Assembly (NCBI RefSeq): GCF_000006765.1
Contig: NC_002516.2
Strand: one strand, 5' to 3'
Length of the DNA: 64,000 bases
DNA from: Pseudomonas aeruginosa PAO1
GTDB lineage: Bacteria; Pseudomonadota; Gammaproteobacteria; Pseudomonadales; Pseudomonadaceae
Position numbers and translations under genes: made by a program. Each line of letters opens with the position of its first letter. Positions within the stretch are counted from its first letter, which is position 1. Under the pieces are notes generated by a model. The model saw nothing but the letters and a program-made list of their open reading frames with translations, was not told the DNA's origin and did not search any database. This document shows positions 43,868-55,436 of this stretch, in pieces.

Positions 43868-45316
43868 ATGAACGGACACGCCAGACACTGGATCGACGGC
43901 GCATGGCTCGATTCCGCGCAGCGGGGACAATCCTTCGACCCCGCCAGCGGCCAGCCGATCGGCACCTACGCCGACGGCGGGCGGGCCGAGGCCGACGCGG
44001 CGATCGCCGCCGCTGTGCGCGCCTTCGAAGATGGTCCCTGGAAGGACGACCACGCGCTGCGCGCGAAAGCCCTGGAGGAAATCGCCGCGGCCTTCGAGCG
44101 GCATGCCGATGCGCTCATCGACCTGCTTGCCCTGGAGAACGGCAAGATCAAGCCCGAGGCTGCCTTCGAGGTCGGCATGGTGCCGGGCAAGCTGCGCTAC
44201 TACGCCGGCCTGGCGCGCAGCGAACGGGGCGCCAGCGGCACGCCGCGCCCCGACGTGGTGTCGCTGGTGCTGCGCGAGCCGATGGGCGTCGCCGGCATCA
44301 TCGTGCCGTGGAATTCACCGGTGGTGCTGATGATCCGCTCCCTGGCGCCGGCGCTGGCCGCCGGTACCACCACGGTGGTGAAGATGCCGGGGCAGACCGC
44401 GCAGACCAACGCCATGGTCGCGCGGATCATCGCCGAAGCGCCGTCGCTGCCTGCCGGGGCGGTGAACATCTTCAGCGAATCGGGTTCCGAAGGCGCCCGG
44501 CGATTGATCGACGCGGCCGAGGTGCCGGTGATCAGCTTCACCGGCTCGAGCGCCACCGGCCGAGCGATTTCCGCCGCCGGCGCGCGGCACCTGAAGCGCT
44601 TCGGCCTGGAACTGGGCGGCAAGACACCGCACCTGGTGTTCGACGACGCCGACCTGGACGCCGCCTTGCCCGTGCTGGAGAAGTCGCTGACGGTGTTCGC
44701 CGGGCAGTTCTGCATGACCGGTTCGCGCCTGCTGGTGCAGCGCGGCGTTGCCGAACGGCTACGCGAACGCCTGGCGCAGCGCCTGGAAAACCTGCGCGTG
44801 GGGCCGGCGGCGGACCCGCGCAGCGACATGGGGCCGCTGATCGACAAGGCCAACGTCGAGCGCGTCGAGCGAGCCGTACGCCAGGCCATCGCCGCCGGCG
44901 CGCGGGTGGTGGTCCGCGGCGGCCCGGTAACCGAGGGCGAGCTGGCGGCCGGCGCCTTCTACCGTCCGACCCTGCTGGAGGTCGATGATCCGGACCTGGA
45001 CATCGTGCAACAGGAAACCTTCGGACCGGTGCTGACCCTGCAGGTATTCGAGCACGAGGAGGAGGGCGTCGCCCTGGCCAACCGCAGCGAGTACGGGCTG
45101 GCGGCCGGGGTCTGGACCCGCGATGTCGCGCGTGCCTTCCGGGTGGCGCGGAAGATTCGCGCCGGCACCGTGTGGATCAACGACTGGGCCAAGGTCTACG
45201 ACGAATTCGAGGAGGGCGGCTACCGCCAGTCCGGCCTCGGCCGGCTGAACGGGGTCGCCGCCCTGGACGACTTCGTCGAATACAAGCACATCAGCCTGAC
45301 CACCGGCGCGGCCTGA
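43868..45316 (+). CDS. Aldehyde dehydrogenase
   Basis: PWNSP, FTGS, ELGGK, GQFC (catalytic Cys), ETFGP; alternative TTG start 43862. Confidence 0.93.
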   Translation: MNGHARHWIDGAWLDSAQRGQSFDPASGQPIGTYADGGRAEADAAIAAAVRAFEDGPWKDDHALRAKALEEIAAAFERHADALIDLLALENGKIKPEAAFEVGMVPGKLRYYAGLARSERGASGTPRPDVVSLVLREPMGVAGIIVPWNSPVVLMIRSLAPALAAGTTTVVKMPGQTAQTNAMVARIIAEAPSLPAGAVNIFSESGSEGARRLIDAAEVPVISFTGSSATGRAISAAGARHLKRFGLELGGKTPHLVFDDADLDAALPVLEKSLTVFAGQFCMTGSRLLVQRGVAERLRERLAQRLENLRVGPAADPRSDMGPLIDKANVERVERAVRQAIAAGARVVVRGGPVTEGELAAGAFYRPTLLEVDDPDLDIVQQETFGPVLTLQVFEHEEEGVALANRSEYGLAAGVWTRDVARAFRVARKIRAGTVWINDWAKVYDEFEEGGYRQSGLGRLNGVAALDDFVEYKHISLTTGAA

Positions 45317-45351
45317 GCCTGGGCGAGCGGTGCGGCCGACGGCGCCGCCCG

Positions 45352-45987
45352 CTACTCCCAGGAGCGGGAATACACGTGTTCGCGGAACAGCTCGGGCAAT
45401 CCGGAAACCTGCTTGAAACGCAGCACCTCGTCATTGTCCATGCCCAGTTCGCGGGCCACGTCGGCCTCGCTCCAGCCGGCCTTGAGCAGGGTCACCACGA
45501 TCGCCGTCATCGGCAATACGCCGTGCACGCCGCGTGCTCGGTTGTGGCGGATGGTGGCGGCGATGCGCTCGCTGTCGCCTTCACGCCCGGCGCGTATCGC
45601 GGCGATCGGCAGGTAGCCGTGCAGACGCTGGCGCAGCGCGCCCTTGGCGCTGCCCACGCGCAGGCGGTGAAAGCCGTCGACCACCTCGTAGCGCCCGTCG
45701 GCCTGCGGATAGGCGACGATGGGCTGGGTGAATCCGTCGGACTCGATGGACAGCCTCAGCAGTCGCATCTCCGGTGGCGCGACGGTATTGGGGTTGTAGT
45801 CGTTGCCGGCGACGCGCTCGGCACGCACCCACTGCACGCAATCGACCGGCTCTTCGGCGAACGGACTGTGCGCGTGGAGCAGCCGGCGGATCCGGTTGAT
45901 GGCTTCAATCCGCTCGGCAAGCGGCAACCCGTGCAGTTCGCCGAACAGCGCCTCGGCTCGCTCCGTCAGTGTCTTTGTCTGTGCCAT
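45352..45987 (-). CDS. cgrC: ParB-like N-domain protein (IbrB/YbdM type), cupA regulator C
   Basis: NDYNPN, GFTQPIV, VVDGFHR, TIRHNRARG. Confidence 0.88.
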   Translation of the reverse strand: MAQTKTLTERAEALFGELHGLPLAERIEAINRIRRLLHAHSPFAEEPVDCVQWVRAERVAGNDYNPNTVAPPEMRLLRLSIESDGFTQPIVAYPQADGRYEVVDGFHRLRVGSAKGALRQRLHGYLPIAAIRAGREGDSERIAATIRHNRARGVHGVLPMTAIVVTLLKAGWSEADVARELGMDNDEVLRFKQVSGLPELFREHVYSRSWE

Positions 45988-46417
45988 GGGCTTTCCTCAT
46001 GAGCGTCACCCAGCTACCCCGGGTGGAATGCACGGCGAAGCCGTGCGGTTCGAGAAGGCGCGCGCAGGCCTGGGGCGCGCGGGTGGTACAGGCCAGCCCG
46101 AGTTGGTCGACATGCCCGAGGACCCGCTCGCGCAGGGTGCGGAACAGCCCGCGACCGCGCGCTTCCGCACGCAGGTAGGCATCGCGCAGGCGAACCACGT
46201 CGGGATGTTGCTCCAGGCTGACGAACCCCAGTATCCGCGTGTCCCCCTGGCGGCGGAGCACGAACCAGCGGTGGTAGGGACCGTCGCTCAGCGGGTAGCC
46301 GCCGCATTCGCGGCGCACCCGGGCGCTGGCGAAGAAGCGGCCCATGCTGGCGAAGAAGGCGGCCTCGTCGTCGAACGAGCGCCACTGCAGGATCTCGCAG
46401 TCTTGCGGGCGGATCAC
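45905..46417 (-). CDS. cgrB: GNAT-family acetyltransferase, cupA regulator B
   Basis: GTG start overlapping the cgrA stop (GTGA); YLRAEARGRGLF acetyl-CoA motif. Confidence 0.75.
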   Translation of the reverse strand: MIRPQDCEILQWRSFDDEAAFFASMGRFFASARVRRECGGYPLSDGPYHRWFVLRRQGDTRILGFVSLEQHPDVVRLRDAYLRAEARGRGLFRTLRERVLGHVDQLGLACTTRAPQACARLLEPHGFAVHSTRGSWVTLMRKAHGTDKDTDGASRGAVRRTARVAACRAD

Positions 46418-47640
46418 GAGCGCTTCTCCCGACCGGGGACCAGTCTGTCGATATCGGCCTGGGAGAAGCCGAAGGACAGCGAGCGGGCCATGTCCTGCTT
46501 CAGCAGGGATAGCGCGATACGCCGCCAGGACGGCTGCTTGCGACGATTCTCCAGGGCCGGGATCCCCGCGTCCGGCCAGATGGCAAGGGGATAGTCGTGC
46601 TGCTTCCACCAGAGGATGAAACGCTCGATGCGCCGCTGGTAGATGCCGCGCAGAGGCGGCGGCATGCTGCGCAGGAGGAACTGGCTGTACTCGCGCCAGG
46701 TGCCGAAGGAGGGCGGCAGGCCAAGGCCGCCACGGTAGCCGAGGAAGCGCTGGCGACAATAGCGCGCCCCATAGTTGGCGCCGGCGACGCGCCGGACTAC
46801 CTTGAACCAGGTGCGTGGCTCGATCCGGTGGAACAGGTCGAGGCCCTTGCGCTGGTCGTCGCCATAGGGCTGGCAGATGCGCATCTGCGAGAACGGCACG
46901 CCGGCGCGGTACATCTGGTCGTAGAGGCGGTTATAGGCGTAGCCGTGGTCGGCGACGCAACGCCAGAGATCCTCGAAACGCCAGTCGTAGATCGGGAAGA
47001 AGCTCACCGCCTGCGGGTTGGCCCGGTCGCGCGCGCTCCAGGCCAGCGGCGCGGAGCCGCCCGGCGGCGTCCAGGCGCATTGTTTCGCCCGGCTCCTGCG
47101 CTTGACCGCCAGGTAGCGATTGAGCGATTCGTCCGAACGGATGCCGACCAGGAACGCGGTAGGCTCTTCCCTGGCCAGCCAGGCGTTGAAGCCGGCGACG
47201 AACTCCTCGAACTCCATGCGGTAGCGGTAGAAGGGGAAGAACGCCGGGTCGCTGATCACCCCTCGCTGCTTCGGTAGCGGGCGCACCCAGTCGGCCTCGG
47301 CGCCGGGCTCCCAGCAGCACCAGTAGGGTTCCTCCAGGCTGGAGGCGTTGCGCAGGTTGAGTGGCAGACAGACCCACCAGGGGCGTACGTCGGGACGCCC
47401 GAGCATCTCGCTGACGTGATCGATGGTGGCCTGGTACTGCCCCTCCAGGTCGATGAACAGTACGTCCACCGGGCTGCGTCCCAACTCGCGTGCCACGTCC
47501 AGCGCCAATTGCAGGGTGACCGAGCTGTCCTTGCCACCGGAGAAGGCGACACAGACGCGCTCGAAGTTCCGGAATACCAGTCGGAGGCGGGATAGGGTTG
47601 CGGCATGCACATCGGCATCCTGGTAATGCTTGCCTGCCAT
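46414..47640 (-). CDS. cgrA: PAPS-reductase-like / DUF3440 protein (IbrA/YbdN type), cupA regulator A
   Basis: PP-loop FSGGKDS, GIRSDES, PIYDW, MRICQPYG. Confidence 0.9.
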   Translation of the reverse strand: MAGKHYQDADVHAATLSRLRLVFRNFERVCVAFSGGKDSSVTLQLALDVARELGRSPVDVLFIDLEGQYQATIDHVSEMLGRPDVRPWWVCLPLNLRNASSLEEPYWCCWEPGAEADWVRPLPKQRGVISDPAFFPFYRYRMEFEEFVAGFNAWLAREEPTAFLVGIRSDESLNRYLAVKRRSRAKQCAWTPPGGSAPLAWSARDRANPQAVSFFPIYDWRFEDLWRCVADHGYAYNRLYDQMYRAGVPFSQMRICQPYGDDQRKGLDLFHRIEPRTWFKVVRRVAGANYGARYCRQRFLGYRGGLGLPPSFGTWREYSQFLLRSMPPPLRGIYQRRIERFILWWKQHDYPLAIWPDAGIPALENRRKQPSWRRIALSLLKQDMARSLSFGFSQADIDRLVPGREKRS

Positions 47641-48492
47641 GGGTGCGAACCTCTTCTTTTAATAACTATTGAGGGAGACCGTTGCGACGACGGTCCATGT
47701 GCAATGTTTGTTTCGGAGTTTCTCCAGGCTATTTTTTCGAGAGTCGCGGCAGCCGGCACGTTCGGCGACGTTGGACTCCGAATCAGTGGATAACGGAAAT
47801 ATGTCCAGGCACTTGGCAGAGCGACGACCAACAGGCCCGACAACTGTCGTGCAGGAACTTTTTCAATGCTAGGCGAAGCCGTGGTTCGAGTTGTTGACTT
47901 GTCGCAAGACGGATTCTCCGAACAGCATCGGCGCAGCGCCCACTTGCAACGAGAGTGCGCACGCCGCCGTTGGCACTCGTCTGCGCACCGGACTTCTGAG
48001 CGGCGGCGGAAAAAGCTTGCTGCGCAAGGAGAAGCGCCTGCGGGTGAACATGGAAATTGCCCGGGAAAAGTCGACGGTAATTATTCGTTGAATAACAGGG
48101 AAGTGCATACTCCAACTTGGAAGTTAACTGCATGGCACCATCCATGCATTACACGGATGACGGTTTTTATTATAAGTCCAAACTGGCGAAGACAAGCAAG
48201 AGAGGCCGGGATGCCAGAGTTCCATAGTCGGAAATACAAGCGTTGCAATGTCGACGGATAGCACGAAGAGGCGGCGGTACCCTGCGAAACGAGGCAATTC
48301 CCCGAATGGCGGGTACTCGAACGGATTTATAAGTCCGCCGTTCGGCGTTCACCTCGACGCCTGTGCACGGGATACTTATATCGGTGGTTCGCACCACTGA
48401 TTATCGATTTGAACTCGTTCGAGTCTTTACCGCGTTCCCGGCCGAAATAAAAGGCGGGTGGACGATTATTGCCTCACACAAGGAACATAGGC
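47641..48492. promoter_or_regulatory. Long AT-richer divergent cgrA/cupA1 control region
   Basis: 852 bp with no credible CDS; imperfect Anr/FNR-like TTGAC-N4-CGCAA at 47894-47907; small inverted repeats at 48111-48121 and 48129-48148. Confidence 0.7.
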
Positions 48493-49044
48493 ATGACCAG
48501 AACTTCGAACCCATGCGCAGTGGTATTGGCCTTTGCGGCAATTGCCGCTTCGGGAACCGCGATGGCGGCAAACACTATCACATTCAGCGGCGAAGTGACC
48601 GACCAGACCTGCCAGGTCGCGGTCAACGGCTTCACCGACCCCACGGTGATCCTCGACAGCGTACCGGTGAGCGCCCTCGATGGCGCAGTGGGCCGCAGCG
48701 CCGGCGAAACCGCCTTCACCCTGCAACTCACCGATTGCGTCGCGCCGACGGCCGACGAGCATTTCACCACCCTGTTCCAGGCCACCAACCCCAGCGCCGC
48801 CGGGAACCTGGTGAACACCGCCGCCAGCGGCGCGACGGGCGTGGCGCTGCAATTGCTCGATAGCGTCGGCGGCAACCCGGTCGACCTGGCCGGCGGCGCG
48901 GCGGTGCCCGCCGGCGACATCGTGCTCGCCAACGGAGCCACCAGCACCAGCTACGACTACGCGGTGCAGTACGTCTCCGAAGCGGCGACCGTGACGCCCG
49001 GTCCGGTACTCGGCGTCGTGACCTACACGCTGCGTTACGAGTGA
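48493..49044 (+). CDS. cupA1: Chaperone-usher fimbrial major subunit
   Basis: Signal peptide, ITFSGEVTDQTC, two Cys, penultimate Tyr (TLRYE). Confidence 0.93.
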   Translation: MTRTSNPCAVVLAFAAIAASGTAMAANTITFSGEVTDQTCQVAVNGFTDPTVILDSVPVSALDGAVGRSAGETAFTLQLTDCVAPTADEHFTTLFQATNPSAAGNLVNTAASGATGVALQLLDSVGGNPVDLAGGAAVPAGDIVLANGATSTSYDYAVQYVSEAATVTPGPVLGVVTYTLRYE

Positions 49045-49131
49045 ATGCCGGCGGCGCATGCGCCGCCCCTTCCTTTTCCCAGCACTAAAGCCGGGCCCGG
49101 TCGCTGGACCGTGCCCGGCCAGGTAAGCCGC

Positions 49132-49878
49132 ATGCCCAGACATTCGTACCGATCCGGCAGGACATCGGCGCTTCTGCTCGTCCTGCTGGCGAGCATCGCC
49201 CAGGCGCGGGCAAGCGTGGTGGTGACCGGGACCCGGGTGATCTATCCCGGCGAGGCACGGGAGAAGACCGTGCAACTGAGCAATCGCGATGCGTTTCCCA
49301 ACGTCGTCCAGGCCTGGGTCGACATCGACGCCCCGGACGCGCCGCCGGACCAGGCGGACGCGCCGTTCCTGGTCAACCCGGCGGTATTCCGCATGGCCCC
49401 GGACAGCGGCCAGACGCTGCGCATCGTCTACACCGGGCAGGGCCTGCCGGGCGATCGCGAATCGCTGTTCCATCTCAACGTCCTGCAGATCCCGCCACGC
49501 AACAGCAGCCATGCGGATCGGAACCAGATGCTGCTGATGCTGCGCAATCGCCTGAAGCTGTTCTACCGCCCGGCGGGCATCCAGGGCCGTCCCGAGGACC
49601 TGCCCGGGCAACTGCGTTTCGCACTGGTCCGGCGCAGCGCCGGCTGGGCGGTGCGGGTGGACAACCCGAGCGGCTACTACGCCTCGTTCGCCAGCGCCAC
49701 GCTCAGCGTCGGCCAGCGCCGCTGGCGCTTGCGCAGCGGCATGCTGGAGCCGCGCAGCCATGCCGAATGGCAGGCCGAAACCCGAGAAGCCCTGCCGCCG
49801 GGACGCGTGCGCCTGCACGCGCTGCTGATCAACGACTACGGCGCCCATATGGATATCCGTCATGACCTATCGCCATGA
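49132..49878 (+). CDS. cupA2: Fimbrial chaperone
   Basis: GTRVIYP, VQAWVD, DRESLFHLNVLQIPP, RLKLFYRP, NPSGYY. Confidence 0.93.
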   Translation: MPRHSYRSGRTSALLLVLLASIAQARASVVVTGTRVIYPGEAREKTVQLSNRDAFPNVVQAWVDIDAPDAPPDQADAPFLVNPAVFRMAPDSGQTLRIVYTGQGLPGDRESLFHLNVLQIPPRNSSHADRNQMLLMLRNRLKLFYRPAGIQGRPEDLPGQLRFALVRRSAGWAVRVDNPSGYYASFASATLSVGQRRWRLRSGMLEPRSHAEWQAETREALPPGRVRLHALLINDYGAHMDIRHDLSP

Positions 49879-52480
49879 ACGCCGCTGCCGCACCGGCACG
49901 GCCCTGATGGCGGGCGGCATGGCGCTGGCGGCGAGCGCCTTCGGTCATGCCCAGCCCGGCTACGAATTCGATGATCGCCTGTTGCTCGGCTCTTCCCTGG
50001 GCGGCGGCGACCTGTCGCGCTTCAACCAGGACGGTCGGATCGATCCGGGTCGCTATCACGTCGATGTCTACCTCAACGAGCGCTTCGCCAGCCGCAGCGA
50101 AGTGAGTTTCCGCGCCAACCCCGCCAGCGGCGCGGTGGAGCCCTGCCTCGACGAAGACTTCCTGCGCCAGCGCCTCGGCGCCAAGCCTGGTGACGATCCG
50201 CGCAAGAGCGGCGACGGGCGCCACTGCGCCTTTCTCGGTGCACGCCTGCCCGGCTCGCGGTTCAGCCTGGACGTCGCCCGCCTGCGCCTGGATCTCTCGG
50301 TGCCGCAAGCCTTGCTCGACCTCAAGCCGCGCGGCTACGTCAGCCCCGAGGAGTGGGACGCCGGCGACAGCATGGGCTTCGTCAACTACGACACCAACCT
50401 CTATCGCTCCGAATACCGCGGCGGCGAATCGGGACGATCGGACTACGCCTATGTCGGCCTGAACAGCGGCATCAACCTCGGCCTGTGGCGTTTGCGCCAC
50501 CAGTCCAACTACACCTATTCCCGCTACAACGGGCAGGCCAGGCGCAAGTGGAACAGCATCCGCACCTATGCCCAGCGCGCCTTGCCGGCCTGGCGCAGCG
50601 AACTGACGGCGGGGGAGAGCTACACCGCCGGCAACCTGCTCGGCAGCATCGGCTACCGCGGCCTGAGCCTGGCTACCGACGACCGCATGCTGCCCGAGTC
50701 CCTGCGCCGCTATGCGCCGCAGGTGCGCGGCACCGCGGCCACCGCGGCGCGGGTGGTGATCAGCCAGAACGGCAGGAAGATCCGCGAGGTGAATGTCGCC
50801 CCCGGTCCGTTCGTCATCGACGATCTCTACGACAGCGCCTATGCCGGCGATCTGGATGTCCAGGTGTTCGAAGCCGATGGCAGCGTATCGAGCTTCAGCG
50901 TGCCGTTCGCCTCGGTCCCGGAGTCCATGCGTCCCGGCCTGTCGCGCTACAGCTTCACCCTGGGCCAGGCGCGCCAGTATGGCGACGGCGACGACCTGTT
51001 CGCCGACTTCACCTACCAGCGCGGCATGAGCAACGCCCTGACCGCCAACCTGGGACTGCGTGTCGCCGACGACTACCTGGCCATGCTGGGCGGCGGCGTC
51101 CTCGCCACCCGCTTCGGCGCCTTCGGCCTGAACAGCACCTATTCCAGCGCACGCGTCGAGGATGGCGCGCGCAAGCAGGGCTGGCGCATCGGGCTCGACT
51201 ACAGCCGGACCTTCCAGCCCACCGGCACTACCCTGACCCTGGCCGGCTACCGCTATTCCACCGAAGGCTACCGCGAACTCGGCGACGTGCTCGGCTCGCG
51301 CGACGCACTGCGCCACGGGGACACCTGGGATTCCGGCAGCTACAAGCAGCGCAACCAGTTCAACCTGCTGGTGAGCCAGGCCCTCGGCGGTTACGGCAAC
51401 CTCTATCTTTCCGGCTCCTCCAGCGATTTCTACGACGGCAAGAGCCGCGACACCCAATTGCAGTTCGGCTACTCCAATACCTGGGGGCAGTTGAGCTACA
51501 ACCTCGCCTGGTCGCGGCAGACCACCACCTACTACCAGGAGCAGGGCGACCAGGACCCTGGCGTCGAGCTGCTCCGGCGCGACCGGCGCAGCGGCCAGCG
51601 CAACGACACCCTGACCCTCAGCGTCTCCATGCCGCTGGGTTCTTCCAGTCGGGCGCCGACGCTCAGCGCCATGGCTACCCGGCGCTCCGGCGACAGCCGT
51701 GGCGGCAGCCTGCAAACCGGGCTGAACGGTACGCTGGGCGACGAGCGTACCTGGAGCTACGCGCTGTCCGCCAACCGCGACAGCGAGGTCGCCGACACCA
51801 CCTGGAACGGCACGTTGCAGAAGCAGGCGGCGCTGGCCACCGTGAATGCCGGCTATGCCCAGGGCGATCGCTACCGGCAATACAGCGGCGGCATCCGTGG
51901 CGCGCTGGTCGCCCACCGCGACGGGCTGACCCTTGGCCCCAGCGTCGGCGATACCTTCGCCCTGGTCGAGGCCAAGGGCGCCAGCGGTGCCGCGATACGC
52001 GGCGGGCAGGGCGCGCGCATCGACGGCAACGGCTATGCGCTGGCCCCCTCGCTGTCGCCCTATCGCTACAACCCGATCTCACTCGATCCCGTTGGCATCG
52101 ATCCCGACGCCGAACTGCTGGAAACCGAGCGCAAGGTCGCGCCCTACGCCGGTGCCAGCGTGCGCGTGACGTTCAGGACGCTGACCGGCCATCCGCTGCT
52201 GATCCAGGCGCGGCGCGAGGACGGCAGTGTGCTGCCGCTCGGCGCCGTGGTGGTCGACGACGGCGGGGCGGCCATCGGCATGGTCGGGCAGGGCGGCCAG
52301 GTCTATGCGCGCGCGGAAAACCAGCGGGGCAGGTTGCTGGTGCAATGGGGAACGGCGCGCAAGGAGCGTTGCGAGTTGCCCTACGACCTGGCCGGTGTGT
52401 CTCGCGACCAGGCGCTGATCCGCCTGCGCGGCACCTGCCGGGCAGCCACCACCGACTCCAACCTGGAGAACGCCAGATGA
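49862..52480 (+). CDS. cupA3: Fimbrial usher
   Basis: PGRYHVDVYLN, LDLSVPQ, GINLGLWRLR, DDRMLP, VAPGPFVIDDL, GMVGQGGQVY. Confidence 0.95.
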   Translation: MTYRHERRCRTGTALMAGGMALAASAFGHAQPGYEFDDRLLLGSSLGGGDLSRFNQDGRIDPGRYHVDVYLNERFASRSEVSFRANPASGAVEPCLDEDFLRQRLGAKPGDDPRKSGDGRHCAFLGARLPGSRFSLDVARLRLDLSVPQALLDLKPRGYVSPEEWDAGDSMGFVNYDTNLYRSEYRGGESGRSDYAYVGLNSGINLGLWRLRHQSNYTYSRYNGQARRKWNSIRTYAQRALPAWRSELTAGESYTAGNLLGSIGYRGLSLATDDRMLPESLRRYAPQVRGTAATAARVVISQNGRKIREVNVAPGPFVIDDLYDSAYAGDLDVQVFEADGSVSSFSVPFASVPESMRPGLSRYSFTLGQARQYGDGDDLFADFTYQRGMSNALTANLGLRVADDYLAMLGGGVLATRFGAFGLNSTYSSARVEDGARKQGWRIGLDYSRTFQPTGTTLTLAGYRYSTEGYRELGDVLGSRDALRHGDTWDSGSYKQRNQFNLLVSQALGGYGNLYLSGSSSDFYDGKSRDTQLQFGYSNTWGQLSYNLAWSRQTTTYYQEQGDQDPGVELLRRDRRSGQRNDTLTLSVSMPLGSSSRAPTLSAMATRRSGDSRGGSLQTGLNGTLGDERTWSYALSANRDSEVADTTWNGTLQKQAALATVNAGYAQGDRYRQYSGGIRGALVAHRDGLTLGPSVGDTFALVEAKGASGAAIRGGQGARIDGNGYALAPSLSPYRYNPISLDPVGIDPDAELLETERKVAPYAGASVRVTFRTLTGHPLLIQARREDGSVLPLGAVVVDDGGAAIGMVGQGGQVYARAENQRGRLLVQWGTARKERCELPYDLAGVSRDQALIRLRGTCRAATTDSNLENAR

Positions 52481-53838
52481 ACCGCACGCTTCCCCTGCTG
52501 CCCGCGCTGGCCCTCGGCGTGTTGCTGGGGCTTCCCGCCAGTGGCCAGGCGACTTGCTACCGGGTCACCTCGGTAGGCAGCGAGACGACCACCTCGAACA
52601 CCCAGATCCGCCCAGGCGAAGGTACCGCCGGCAGCTGGACCGGCGCCTGCGACACCTGCAATGGCTCGCTCGGCCTGCCCAGCGTGGTCAACGTCAGCGA
52701 CGAGAGTTTCCAGCCCTATCCGACGCTCATCGCCAGCGCGGTGGCGCCGCTGACCCAGTACGGCGCCACCGGCGGCTACGACCCCGAACGGGTGTTCTTC
52801 CGCTGTAGCGCCGGGGACGCCGTCTACGAGATGTTTTCTACCAACGGCGACGATCTCTATAGCGGCTACTACACCGGCGCCGATACGGTGGGCAACGACA
52901 TCGGCCTGCAGGATGCCTACCGGACCGCCTGGCCCAACGTGCTGCTGCGCCTGACCAACGTCGAGACGGGGGAAACCATCACGCCGATCTGGAAGGAGCG
53001 CCAGCTCTCCGGGCTGGACATAGACTCGCGCGGCTTCCAGCTGGTCAAGGCGAAGAACCTCGCAGCGGTACGCGCCGAGCTGTACAGCGCGCCGCTGGAG
53101 GCGATCCGCTACTACTCGCCGACGATCCTCTCGCAGCCCTATTCCTACACCCAGCCGGCGGCCTACATCGCCATCAAGGGGCCGGGCCTGACCGCGCCGA
53201 CCGTCGGCCAGGCGCACGTGGGCGGCAACTGGGGCGGCTGGTACAGCAACTGGCCGGGTGCCATCGGGCTGTACCGCTACGTGACCCTGAAACGCTATCC
53301 CACCTGCGCGGTGATGACGGTCACCCCGCACGTGCAGTTCCCGTCCATCACCCTGGCCGAGATCGATAGCGGCGGCGTGCGCGAGGCGCCCTTCGAACTC
53401 ACCTTCAAGTGCCAGAGCGGCATGACCAACGGCACCGGGGCCGGCGCCACGGCGCTGGGCATCCGCGTGTCCAGCGGGGCCCTGGCGGCCAGCCCGGCGC
53501 TGGGCCTGGTCAACGCCAGTGGCGGACTGTCCTACCTGCTCTCCGACCGTTATGGGGAGCCGGGCATTGCCCGTGGGGTCGGCATCCGCATCTACCGCGA
53601 CGGCACGCCGATGACGCTCCTGGCCAACGAGAACTCCGCCGGCGGCAGCAACGCCGAGGCCACCGGCTGGTACCCCGCCATCGGTGGCGCGACCCAGGCC
53701 AACGGCGGTAGCGGCGGCATCGACCTGTACCGCGAAACCTTCCGCGCGCGCCTGGAGAAACTCGCGCTCGGCAGCCAGCCCGGCGTCACGGCGGGGCGAG
53801 TCGAGGCCACGGCGCAGGTGGTTATCCGTGTCCAGTAG
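52477..53838 (+). CDS. cupA4: Fimbrial tip adhesin
   Basis: Signal peptide, large N-domain plus pilin C-domain (C..VTPHVQF, ATAQVVIRVQ); ATGA overlap. Confidence 0.88.
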   Translation: MNRTLPLLPALALGVLLGLPASGQATCYRVTSVGSETTTSNTQIRPGEGTAGSWTGACDTCNGSLGLPSVVNVSDESFQPYPTLIASAVAPLTQYGATGGYDPERVFFRCSAGDAVYEMFSTNGDDLYSGYYTGADTVGNDIGLQDAYRTAWPNVLLRLTNVETGETITPIWKERQLSGLDIDSRGFQLVKAKNLAAVRAELYSAPLEAIRYYSPTILSQPYSYTQPAAYIAIKGPGLTAPTVGQAHVGGNWGGWYSNWPGAIGLYRYVTLKRYPTCAVMTVTPHVQFPSITLAEIDSGGVREAPFELTFKCQSGMTNGTGAGATALGIRVSSGALAASPALGLVNASGGLSYLLSDRYGEPGIARGVGIRIYRDGTPMTLLANENSAGGSNAEATGWYPAIGGATQANGGSGGIDLYRETFRARLEKLALGSQPGVTAGRVEATAQVVIRVQ

Positions 53839-54541
53839 GCGCGCGCTCGCGCTGCTGGCCATGCTTTGCCTCGCGCCGACGAGCGAGGCCGGAGTGACCG
53901 CGGAGCGCACCCGCCTGGTGTTCGTGGAGGGCCAGCGCGAGGCCTCGTTGCTGCTGGTCAACCAGAATCCCTACCCGGTGCTGGTGCAGGCGTGGGTCGA
54001 TGACGGCGCCCTCGACGGCGAACCGGATACCGCGCTGGCTCCGTTCCTGCCGCTGCCGCCCGTATTCCGCCTGGAGCCGGGACGCCAGCGCAGCCTGCGC
54101 CTGCTGGCTACCGGCCAGGCCCAGGCACGGGATCGCGAATCGCTGTACTGGCTGAACATCTACGAGATCCCCCCGCAAGCCACCGCCGAGGCCGCTGGCC
54201 GGCCCCGGCTCACGGTCACCCTGCGAACCCAGATGAAGGTGCTGTACCGCCCGCACGGCCTGCATCCGCACGCCGAGGACGCGGCCGCCGAACTGGGCTT
54301 CGCGCTGCGCGACGAGACCCTGCGGGTGGACAACCCGACGCCGTACTTCGTGTCCCTGGCGGGGCTGGCGCTGGAGATAGGGGAGACGCGCCTGGATCTG
54401 CCCGGAACGCTGCTGGCTCCGCGCTCGCAACGACGCCTCGGCCTGCCGCGGCGGGTGGACGGCGGGACGCGCGGCGAGGTGGCGTTCGACTGGATCGACG
54501 ACAACGGCGTCAGCCGCCAGGAAAGGAAAGCTCTACAGTGA
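53828..54541 (+). CDS. cupA5: Second fimbrial chaperone
   Basis: RTRLVF, LVQAWVD, DRESLYWLNIYEIPP, QMKVLYRP, NPTPYF. Confidence 0.92.
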   Translation: MSSRRALALLAMLCLAPTSEAGVTAERTRLVFVEGQREASLLLVNQNPYPVLVQAWVDDGALDGEPDTALAPFLPLPPVFRLEPGRQRSLRLLATGQAQARDRESLYWLNIYEIPPQATAEAAGRPRLTVTLRTQMKVLYRPHGLHPHAEDAAAELGFALRDETLRVDNPTPYFVSLAGLALEIGETRLDLPGTLLAPRSQRRLGLPRRVDGGTRGEVAFDWIDDNGVSRQERKALQ

Positions 54542-55395
54542 ACGGTTCCCCACAGGCTCGCCAGCACGAGCACCCACCGGCCGTTGCCGCCTCCCTGGCC
54601 GGCGACCTGCGCCTCGCCCGGCGTTTCCAGGCCGCCCTGGCGCGCGGTCGGGTGCGCCTGGACTGGCAGGCCGTACGGCATGCCGGGCATCCGGAATGGG
54701 AGCCGCTCTACCGGGAAACCCTGCTCAGGGTTACGGCCGCCAGCGGCGAGCCGCCGTTGCCGACCCAGGAACTGATCCTGGCGCTGGAGCGGCTCGGCCT
54801 GGTACGCCTGCTCGATCGCTGCGTGCTGGGCACGGTCCTCGACCGGCTGAACGCCGAGCCTACCTTGCGCCTGGCCTGCAACCTGTCGCGCCAGAGCGCG
54901 GCGATGGATGCCTGGTGGGAAGCGGTCTGCCGATGGCTGGCCGCCCGTCCGCAGGTGGCACGGAGGCTGACGCTGGAGCTGACCGAGACCGCCGTGGGCG
55001 AGAGAGTCGCGACCCGGGAGTTCATCCGACGCCTGCGCGAACATGGCGTGCGCATCGCGATAGACGACTTCGGCGCGGCGCACAACAACCTGGACTTCGT
55101 TCTCGATGCCCGTCCCGATGTGATCAAGATCGATTGCCGGTATACCCGCGAAGCACGTCGCTCGGCGAAGGGCGCCGAAGTGCTGCGCCATCTGCTGGCC
55201 CTGTGCCGCGAACTGGCGCCCTGCGTGGTCCTGGAAGGTCTCGAGGAGGACGATGCGTTCGCCCGGCTGCCGACCGGGGACGTCTATCTCCAGGGCAACG
55301 CGATCGCGCCGCCGATGCGGGTCGAACCGCCGCTGTCCGTACGCCGGCCGAAGAGCCGGGCGCGGATCGAGGCGCTGGCGAGCCGCCAGGGGTGA
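54538..55395 (+). CDS. Stand-alone EAL-domain protein (c-di-GMP phosphodiesterase family)
   Basis: ETLLR, NLS, ELTE, IDDFG, IKID, EGLE, QG. Confidence 0.88.
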   Translation: MNGSPQARQHEHPPAVAASLAGDLRLARRFQAALARGRVRLDWQAVRHAGHPEWEPLYRETLLRVTAASGEPPLPTQELILALERLGLVRLLDRCVLGTVLDRLNAEPTLRLACNLSRQSAAMDAWWEAVCRWLAARPQVARRLTLELTETAVGERVATREFIRRLREHGVRIAIDDFGAAHNNLDFVLDARPDVIKIDCRYTREARRSAKGAEVLRHLLALCRELAPCVVLEGLEEDDAFARLPTGDVYLQGNAIAPPMRVEPPLSVRRPKSRARIEALASRQG

Positions 55396-55436
55396 CCGGG
55401 GAGGGCGCCCGGCCTGGCACGGTCGGCGAAAAATCT

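Follow-up and report, generated by a model that had tools for sequence, protein, structure and literature searches.

The cgrABC genes beside the cupA fimbrial operon of Pseudomonas aeruginosa: a possible copy of a mobile IbrA-IbrB-type module acting as a local anti-silencing switch

Related systems and the cgr locus

The closest described relatives of cgrA and cgrC of Pseudomonas aeruginosa PAO1, which together with cgrB lie beside the cupA fimbrial operon, are the IbrA/IbrB and YbdN/YbdM pairs of Escherichia coli. In these pairs, members of both families are arranged as in cgr, with gene order and orientation preserved (identity is ~40% for CgrA and ~52-55% for CgrC), and the homology to IbrA and IbrB that an earlier note on this DNA had asserted is seen in database names as well as in matches. 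Sandt et al. are said to have described E. coli IbrA and IbrB, in 2002, as co-activators of prophage genes and as positive regulators of the eib adhesin genes. The systems differ in their targets, a chaperone-usher operon for cgr and a trimeric autotransporter for ibrAB, and in the additional presence of cgrB, which encodes a divergent, probable acetyltransferase of the GNAT family and is absent from the enterobacterial copies examined. We analyzed the cgr locus within a window of 64,000 nucleotides (contig NC_002516.2), to which all positions refer unless stated otherwise.

A second comparison is offered by two CTP-dependent transcription regulators with a ParB fold, VirB from Shigella and the KorB protein of plasmid RK2. 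KorB is a transcriptional regulator, and its ParB fold is able to regulate promoters at a distance. Like CgrC, both proteins combine a ParB nucleotide-binding N-terminal domain with a helix-turn-helix (HTH) and are not classical transcription factors, VirB being compared here by its description only. VirB relieves H-NS-type silencing at AT-rich acquired virulence genes, and does so with CTP and without a covalent mark (PMC10653881, PMC10770331); silencing by MvaT at cupA poses the same regulatory problem. CgrC differs from VirB and KorB in two motifs (DGFHR for GERR, HNRARG for ENxQR), in lacking a C-terminal dimerization domain, and in its dependence on a PP-loop partner, which neither VirB nor KorB has.

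The cgrABC genes, their domain similarities and their role in phase-variable cupA expression have been published, and the element is not new. PA2127 is CgrA and PA2128 is CupA1 (PMC12977541). PMC12071387 and PMC12977541 both cite McManus & Dove 2011, a paper whose title names a CgrA-CgrC complex and positive regulation of cupA, and for control by MvaT and Anr they cite Vallet-Gely 2007. What the earlier note had presented as established (the need for cgr in phase-variable cupA expression, the activity of IbrAB, and the role of DndC) agrees with these citing papers, as far as they relate the original work, and with database names. To this, the present analysis adds the pairing of CgrA with CgrC across genomes, the single conserved cysteine of CgrA, the ParB/Noc/KorB-type fold of CgrC, a dedicated GNAT subfamily including a fusion to an SNF2 helicase, the recurrent layout with adhesin genes, and a set of residues suited to mutation.

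We consider the chances about even that in cgrABC P. aeruginosa has its own version of a mobile IbrA-(GNAT)-IbrB module, serving as a local on-switch of the xenogeneically silenced cupA operon by targeted anti-silencing combined with feedback. This reading builds on gene anatomy, domain folds, motif conservation, the CgrA-CgrC pairing, the dedicated GNAT and the shared AT-rich spacer, all directly observed. It is further favored by the recurrence of the module beside adhesin genes in other bacteria and by the regulation reported for the homologs of E. coli K-12. The interval in which the earlier note had placed the trio runs exactly from the stop codon of cgrC to the start codon of cgrA, and comprises the following genes, with the spacer and the operon on their far side:

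45352-47640, minus strand: cgrC stop to cgrA start, three coupled genes (open reading frame list)
46414..47640, minus strand: cgrA (PA2127), 408 amino acids (aa), PP-loop ATP-pyrophosphatase-like (open reading frame and Pfam)
45905..46417, minus strand: cgrB (PA2126.1), 170 aa, divergent GNAT
45352..45987, minus strand: cgrC (PA2126), 211 aa, ParB-like protein with HTH
47641..48468, no strand: cupA-cgrA spacer, 828 bp, AT-rich, between the divergent cgrA and cupA1
48469..54541, plus strand: cupA1-cupA5, chaperone-usher fimbrial operon, the regulated target (Pfam)

The stop codon of cgrA and the GTG start of cgrB overlap as GTGA, while the last 83 nt of cgrB (45905-45987) overlap cgrC in a different frame. 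Each of the exact CgrA, CgrB and CgrC proteins is found on >1000 P. aeruginosa contigs.

The CgrA-CgrC pair and its GNAT partner

Homologs were surveyed using one genome per species, with 80 loci fetched. A CgrC homolog adjoins the CgrA homolog on the same strand in 76 of these (downstream in 70, upstream in 6), and two of the four loci without the pairing are contig ends. This pairing suggests that CgrA and CgrC form one functional unit, in agreement with the published complex. The universal unit is the CgrA-CgrC pair, with the GNAT as a recurrent accessory. The earlier note had treated the trio as the unit; the trio does recur, but its core is the pair. CgrA relatives number >7,900 protein clusters, and an all-against-all clustering of the flanking open reading frames revealed no further family common across lineages.

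The earlier note had described CgrA as a PP-loop protein with an SGGKDS motif and no CC...CxxC iron-sulfur motif, CgrB as a GNAT and CgrC as ParB/Srx-like, and had taken all three for enzyme-like proteins rather than classical activators. These observations are confirmed, with caveats for CgrB, and all three products do resemble enzymes. CgrA is matched above the cut-offs by Pfam PAPS_reduct (phosphoadenosine phosphosulfate [PAPS] reductase; E 7.9e-16, 59.0 bits, cut-off 22.5) and by DUF3440 (E 1.2e-23, 84.2 bits, cut-off 25, residues 247-348), and it also matches phrog_2302 (E 1.7e-75). A fold like that of PAPS reductase and FAD synthase takes up the N-terminal ~250 aa, and the C-terminal part is the helical DUF3440 region. 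In an AlphaFold 2 (AF2) model with a mean per-residue confidence (pLDDT) of 84.8, Foldseek finds no fold other than the PAPS-reductase-like one, with the PAPS domain of FAD synthase, APS/PAPS reductases, TtuA/NcsA, LarE and CysD matched at ~15% identity; the PDB domains matched are of PAPS-reductase type and ~200-300 residues long, with a query-normalized TM of ~0.3, i.e., they cover the N-terminal domain. The features of CgrA discussed here are encoded as follows:

47524..47541, minus strand: codons of S34-G-G-K-D-S39, the PP loop, read from the sequence (SGGKDS, residues 34-39)
46858..46881, minus strand: codons of R254-I-C256-Q-P-Y-G-D261, with the sole broadly conserved cysteine
46417..46902, minus strand: C-terminal helical region (DUF3440), from Pfam, alignment and model secondary structure

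An alignment of 63 diverse homologs (37-88% identity) placed CgrA firmly in the IbrA/DUF3440 family, as every invariant column of the alignment is present in it. The PP loop has S34, G36, K37, D38 and S39 as invariant residues, with G35 kept in at least 90% of the homologs. Invariant or nearly so are also D64/E66, R168/E171/S172/R175, the adenine-side motif P216-x-Y-D-W (PIYDW) and R254-I-C-Q-P-x-G, with R254, P258 and G260 never varying and C256 present in at least 90%. The C-terminal region adds W278, R284, G287, Y294, W315, W372 and R374 as invariant residues. The PP loop, R168/E171/S172/R175 and C256 are retained from Proteobacteria to Bacillota, Bacteroidota and an archaeal metagenome-assembled genome. 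As neither the PP loop nor the R-x-x-E-S-x-x-R motif varies among homologs of 37-88% identity, nucleotide chemistry has probably been retained in the regulator copies and not just in those of phages. An iron-sulfur cluster was considered, since four cysteines (C30, C91, C108 and C256) are conserved in the close clade; C30, C91 and C108 are conserved in that clade only, however, and across all 63 sequences C256 is the single conserved cysteine, and an iron-sulfur site was rejected.

The database name of the exact protein in P. aeruginosa is phosphoadenosine phosphosulfate reductase. With CysH and CysD, CgrA does share the N-terminal alpha/beta ATP-pyrophosphatase fold and three motifs, namely the PP loop, R-x-x-E/Q-S-x-x-R and, on the adenine side, P-x-x-D-W. 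However, identity to them is ~15%, the scores of 19-42 bits contrast with cut-offs of 154-397 (for CysH, 19-22 bits against 154-254), and CgrA has an extra helical domain of 160 residues. It has neither the ECGLH tail of CysH nor CC...CxxC, and no sulfur-assimilation genes are found at the cgr locus. By position, C256 may correspond to the first cysteine of SIGCxPCT. All other curated family thresholds tested, including those for DndC and BrxP, likewise lie far above the scores of CgrA.

CgrC is less readily classified from its single sequence, for which Pfam ParB_N gives E 1.1e-4 and 22.6 bits, under the cut-off of 26.3. The assignment becomes firm with a profile, which matches ParB (4umk, E 5.6e-7) and Noc (7nfu, E 6.6e-7), and with the fold: in the AF2 model (pLDDT 87.0), the Foldseek alignments to Noc, ParB, KorB and Spo0J (E 3e-8 to 1e-6) cover 150-170 columns and take in both the nucleotide-binding domain and the HTH. 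Residues 1-40 form a helical hairpin at the N-terminus, followed by the ParB/Srx-type nucleotide-binding domain (~45-135) and the HTH domain (~157-200), directly after which the 211-aa protein stops, without the C-terminal dimerization domain of ParB. The relevant segments are:

45787..45804, minus strand: codons of N62-D-Y-N-P-N67, ParB box I position, aligned to NPYQPR of 4umk
45664..45678, minus strand: codons of D104-G-F-H-R108 (residues 104-108), ParB box II (GERR) position
45523..45546, minus strand: codons of H148-N-R-A-R-G-V-H155, a family signature
45403..45519, minus strand: predicted HTH DNA-binding region, residues ~157-195, from the model and fold alignments (model helices 157-169, 174-181 and 185-195)

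N62, Y64, N65, P66 and N67 are invariant, as are E73, D104, G105, H107 and R108, and N149, R150, A151, R152, G153 and H155. In the hidden Markov model alignment, vvDGfHRlr of the CgrC family stands opposite liAGERRLR of ParB 4umk, and the fold position suggests that HNRARGVH is the equivalent of ParB box III (ENxQR). All three pocket motifs of ParB are thus replaced by residues that are family-specific yet invariant, suggesting that a ligand pocket has been kept. By its fold matches, CgrC is nearest to Noc, ParB and KorB, which bind DNA in a CTP-dependent manner; the likeness is one of fold only, and CTP dependence may or may not follow from it. A phrog_2159 match (E 3.9e-63) and the NCBI name "IbrB-like domain-containing protein" agree with the ParB N-terminal fold, the NDYNPN, DGxHR and HNRARGxH motifs and the C-terminal HTH in placing CgrC among the IbrB-like ParB/Srx proteins. 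It is not a canonical partition ParB: TIGR00180 scores 19.5 bits against 58.45, DGFHR replaces GERR, and no ParA-like gene is present among the neighbors of the cgr locus. Taken together, CgrA and CgrC both keep what look like working nucleotide sites, in regulator and phage copies alike, and their catalytic-type motifs are under very strong constraint.

These folds also allow for an explanation in which the three proteins act, by adenylylation, phosphorylation or acetylation, in the synthesis or turnover of a metabolite, or on a protein substrate (MvaT/MvaU, CgrC or RNA polymerase, for instance), with CgrC coupling this chemistry to DNA binding. SbnI, which has a ParB/Srx fold, is both an O-phosphoserine synthase and a regulator, and provides an analogy. 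ParB/Srx-fold kinases (SbnI and free serine kinase) are indeed among the sequence and fold matches of CgrC, the nearest solved folds of CgrA include the small-molecule adenylyltransferases FAD synthase and FMN adenylyltransferase besides CysD, and GNATs mostly acetylate small molecules or proteins. However, sulfiredoxin and SbnI match CgrC ~4-5 orders of magnitude more weakly than ParB, Noc and KorB, no transporter or biosynthetic genes accompany the module, and the contexts in phage replication modules and beside SNF2 genes favor nucleic acid over metabolism. We therefore regard a small-molecule or protein substrate as quite unlikely.

CgrB is a probable GNAT by profile, being borderline and divergent as a single sequence. 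Acetyltransf_1 matches the single sequence with E 1e-3 and 19.8 bits, just below the cut-off of 20.7. A profile of 24 sequences finds GNAT 3gy9 as its best solved structure (E 0.0057), the weaker matches being mostly GNATs; several homologs have precomputed PF00583 matches, with relatives above the threshold, and NCBI names the exact 170-aa protein GNAT N-acetyltransferase. The "GxG" motif that the earlier note had pointed to is only partly canonical:

46142..46159, minus strand: codons of R87-G-R-G90-L-F92, at the position of the acetyl-CoA pyrophosphate motif (Q/R-x-x-G-x-G/A)

This segment aligns to RSHGIG of 3gy9. R87 and F92 are invariant and G90 is kept in at least 90% of the family, with phenylalanine at the usual last G/A position. 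The family core is ~130-150 aa, the typical length of the relatives; the C-terminal ~30 residues of CgrB, encoded in the overlap with cgrC, are not conserved and are probably an extension.

A word-indexed search with CgrB returned only 40 clusters, while an exhaustive profile search returned 420 representatives, 95 of them at E <=1e-10. In the 80 loci, close CgrB relatives are confined to the close proteobacterial clade, and distant GNATs occur in three more. Eight relatives were looked up. One of these, P0338, is a multi-GNAT protein that is unrelated, matched weakly and has no module in its vicinity; the seven informative ones all adjoin a CgrA homolog, plus a CgrC homolog where the contig allows, in the order A-B-C, B-A-C or A-C-B. 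This indicates that CgrB is a member of a GNAT subfamily dedicated to the module. Genuine fusions of such GNATs are to SNF2 or to zinc-finger/HTH partners, and none is to IbrA. On a phage-like metagenomic contig (L087 3340-6955), an SNF2 helicase carries a CgrB-like GNAT at its C-terminus (P0236) and is followed directly by IbrA and IbrB homologs; on a 77-kb contig (L088 4662-10400), IbrA is followed by a zinc-finger/HTH::GNAT fusion (P0240) and then by a ParB-like gene, before which two GIY-YIG homing-endonuclease genes have been inserted. Three apparent CgrA::CgrB fusions (P0133, P0135 and P0046; 541-610 aa) proved to be out-of-frame read-throughs, and were discarded as frameshift artifacts.

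In a non-catalytic switch, CgrA and CgrC would bind nucleotides for their conformation only, in the way that ParB uses CTP, the complex would act as an architectural anti-silencer or recruit RNA polymerase, and CgrB would have a structural or chaperoning role. Switch-type CTPases are the closest folds to CgrC, the acetyl-CoA motif of CgrB is non-canonical in its terminal phenylalanine and, as the alignment reads, the usual tyrosine before the GF motif is absent, and most modules do without a GNAT, such as that of Citrobacter with the same fimbrial layout. Against this, conservation in CgrA extends beyond the PP loop (D64/E66, R168, E171, S172, R175, PIYDW and C256), a pattern expected of a working active site, and the CgrB-like subfamily has been kept beside the pair over large distances. 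A purely conformational switch is, in our estimation, improbable.

The cupA-cgrA spacer and the origin of the switch

The 828-bp spacer presumably holds the cgr and cupA promoters and forms the target silenced by MvaT. It has a GC content of 0.52-0.57 (0.54 overall), compared with 0.67-0.72 on either flank, and is the sole AT-rich stretch of the locus. Tandem repeats are absent from it, and its inverted repeats are weak and scattered, none forming a convincing invertible element. We could thus rule out slipped-strand and invertible-element switching, and the claim of the earlier note that no DNA rearrangement underlies the cupA switch is borne out.

Switching without rearrangement could arise as follows. 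CgrC, with its nucleotide pocket and HTH, would bind the AT-rich spacer, and CgrA, as a catalytically competent PP-loop ATP pyrophosphatase, would bind CgrC and carry out an ATP-dependent, adenylylation-type step on some substrate. CgrB, as the dedicated GNAT partner, would acylate this substrate or a partner protein. The nucleotide-charged complex would then displace or remodel the MvaT/MvaU filament, opening both divergent promoters, and cgrABC, being read from the same de-silenced spacer, would reinforce their own synthesis, yielding ON and OFF states while the DNA sequence remains unchanged. What we infer here is that the complex acts by anti-silencing, that catalysis is required and that bistability stems from feedback. 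As CgrC is ParB/Noc/KorB-like, the cgr and cupA promoters share the AT-rich spacer, and VirB sets a precedent, such feedback would be a simpler route to bistability than a chemical mark.

Several points weigh against this interpretation. The family is common in hosts without an H-NS- or MvaT-type silencer (Streptococcus and Flavobacterium phages, and Clostridia), so anti-silencing cannot be its general function. P. paraeruginosa keeps cgrABC without cupA or the spacer, suggesting that cupA may not be the sole target of Cgr. A CTP-gated sliding clamp is not assured, given that CgrC has no dimerization domain and carries DGFHR in place of GERR, and the nucleotide specificity of a ParB fold is not predictable from sequence or from AlphaFold (PMC12704722). 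The strictly conserved apparent catalytic center and the dedicated GNAT imply a real chemical product, which the model leaves unnamed. Finally, our searches yielded neither a CgrC-site motif nor an Anr box with <=2 mismatches. For the former, no 9-12-mer was common to the regions upstream of cgrA homologs beyond what orthologous flanks would give; for the latter, TTGAT-N4-ATCAA had no match at that stringency within 47641-48468, even though the literature, as cited in later papers, reports Anr-dependent cgr expression.

The earlier note had proposed that the trio writes a heritable chemical mark. In the form closest to that proposal, CgrA and CgrB, targeted by CgrC, would put a covalent base or backbone mark on the spacer DNA, which would block MvaT and carry the ON state through replication. 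Conceptual templates for a heritable mark are the Dam/Lrp switch of pap and the Dam/OxyR switch of agn43, which, like cupA, turn an adhesin on and off with no DNA rearrangement; there, a global methylase competes with a site-specific binding protein, whereas at cgr there is no methylase and the local genes are the switch. More specific is the likeness to phosphorothioation. The PAPS-reductase/PP-loop fold of CgrA is also that of DndC, SspD and BrxP, which act in DNA phosphorothioation and are matched weakly, and a ParB-like protein paired with a PAPS-reductase-like one is also the arrangement of DndB and DndC; the ParB-like DpdB belongs to a DNA-base modification system, and DndB is said to regulate Dnd negatively (PMC12839542). 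In DndB/DndC (SspD, BrxP), as in cgr, a DGxHR-type ParB-superfamily protein is combined with a PAPS-reductase-like PP-loop ATP pyrophosphatase. The invariant active-site residues and the mobile copies amid replication and recombination genes, often with SNF2 upstream and once with an SNF2::GNAT fusion, are also compatible with a mark.

However, the likeness to Dnd does not extend far. CgrA reaches 18.3 bits with TIGR03183, for which the cut-off is 290.4, and PADLOC DndC gives E 9e-6 with no domain passing; CgrC has no DndB/DGQHR match in NCBIfam or PADLOC at E <=0.01, so that its likeness to DndB is confined to the DGxHR motif. DndC has no DUF3440 region, and the cgr locus has no DndA/D/E-like, sulfur-mobilizing or other modification partner among its neighbors. 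CgrA, with its single conserved cysteine, lacks the conserved cysteine set and the iron-sulfur center. There is also no reader, eraser or restriction partner, and PADLOC finds no system. The mark of a local enzyme would need continued expression to withstand dilution, which adds little beyond feedback, and no such modification has been reported. The heritable covalent mark thus found no direct support in this analysis, and we consider a mark on the spacer DNA unlikely. A known anti-phage defense system could also be rejected: PADLOC was negative, with no matches for CgrB and CgrC and only weak shared-domain matches for CgrA.

A broader version has a small chance of being correct. IbrA-GNAT-IbrB, together with SNF2 in phages, may be an undescribed site-directed machine that modifies nucleic acid or nucleoid proteins, in which the ParB-like CgrC would bring two enzymes, a PP-loop protein that adenylylates and an acyltransferase, to particular DNA sites; at cupA this would leave an ON mark that excludes MvaT, and elsewhere it would protect or de-repress incoming phage or island DNA. 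The module was found in phages (223 records), plasmids (731 records) and islands. In the two phages examined, the pair lies amid early, replication and recombination genes, and SNF2 helicases are the commonest upstream neighbors in genome loci (5-6 of ~50). These DNA-centered contexts, along with the SNF2::GNAT fusion and the GIY-YIG insertions, fit an origin as a nucleic-acid-directed enzyme set.

If the CgrA-CgrC pair is a nucleotide-driven anti-silencer, it would represent a second, partner-dependent route against H-NS-type silencing, unlike that of VirB, and a portable switch for adhesin genes. If a mark is written, epigenetic systems would gain a novel type. The analysis names residues for mutation, the GNAT as a dedicated third subunit, and the homologs ybdN and ybdM of E. 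coli K-12 as a test bed. The latter lie between ybdO (encoding a LysR-type protein) and ybdL, near ahpCF-uspG-rnk. As ybdO is under H-NS control and the ybdN promoter is predicted to be FNR-dependent (PMC9068703), the regulation of this locus parallels the control of cgr by MvaT and Anr.

Adhesin genes and other neighbors of the module

Two further loci combine the module with adhesin genes. In Citrobacter meridianamericanus (L058 3259-9811), an 802-bp spacer with a GC content of 0.31-0.33 separates a chaperone-usher operon from an ibrAB-like pair transcribed in the opposite direction. There is no GNAT, CgrA identity is 38%, and a LuxR-type gene follows the pair; this layout is the cupA-cgr architecture, arisen independently. 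The first gene of the Citrobacter operon (L058 6611-7159), like CupA1, has no Pfam match at the thresholds used, while the later subunits match Fimbrial. On the megaplasmid of Ralstonia solanacearum (L081 3099-9271), a YadA-type trimeric autotransporter of 1206 aa is encoded directly upstream of cgrA, cgrB and cgrC homologs (75%, 54% and 68% identity, respectively), a layout that recalls eib beside ibrAB in E. coli. Both the adhesin and the cgrB homolog are missing from the gene table of the plasmid.

Similarly, an autotransporter gene lies upstream of the pair on an E. coli IncF plasmid, and a chaperone-usher fimbrial operon is found 3 kb downstream of the module in Achromobacter. An adhesin beside every copy of the close clade can nevertheless be rejected, as the close copies of Sphingomonas (L002) and Bordetella (L005) have no recognizable adhesin nearby. 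With ~4-6 independent cases among ~55 contexts, the link to adhesins is recurrent but not universal, its enrichment being modestly above chance.

The arrangement in P. paraeruginosa ATCC 9027 (L001) is of a different kind. Its cgrA, cgrB and cgrC are intact at 82-88% identity (compared over the full length of cgrA and cgrB, and over residues 1-206 of 211 for cgrC), while the spacer, cupA1-5 and the EAL gene that follows them are replaced by ~400 bp of GC-rich DNA (L001 7543-7949, opposite 47696-55424 of the window). In E. coli (L085, L086), 2,146 of 5,426 complete genomes (40%) hold a second ibrAB-like pair besides ybdNM, located in genomic islands and at up to 4 places per genome. In Nissle 1917, this pair is divergent from a cluster encoding YaiO, a glycosyltransferase, an acetyltransferase and PIG-L, with ~1.8 kb and no annotated gene between them.

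Around the cgr genes of P. aeruginosa itself, the side away from the cup genes holds a LysR gene, a GMC oxidoreductase and an aldehyde dehydrogenase. A scan for sigma-70 promoters over 45200-48600 found none. A HutC site, TAGTCGGAAATACAAG, has been published for the cupA1-cgrA spacer (PMC12977541) and lies at 48225-48240. A weak direct repeat of 21 nt (48177-48197 and 48221-48241) has this site as one of its copies. Over the whole window, TTGAT-N4-ATCAA with <=2 mismatches has 21 matches, compared with 5 in shuffles, an enrichment of ~4x. The fimbrial operon and the gene that follows it are composed as follows:

48469-49044, plus strand: cupA1 (PA2128), no Pfam match at the thresholds used
between cupA1 and cupA3, plus strand: cupA2, chaperone
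49862-52480, plus strand: cupA3, usher (Pfam Usher/PapC_N/PapC_C)
52477-53838, plus strand: cupA4, fimbrial/adhesin (Pfam Fimbrial)
ending at 54541, plus strand: cupA5, chaperone (PapD_N/PapD_C, the Pfam basis for the chaperones of the operon)
54538-55395, after cupA5: EAL-domain gene (cyclic di-GMP phosphodiesterase-type)

The EAL gene starts 4 nt before the stop codon of cupA5, suggesting that it is probably co-translated with the fimbrial operon.

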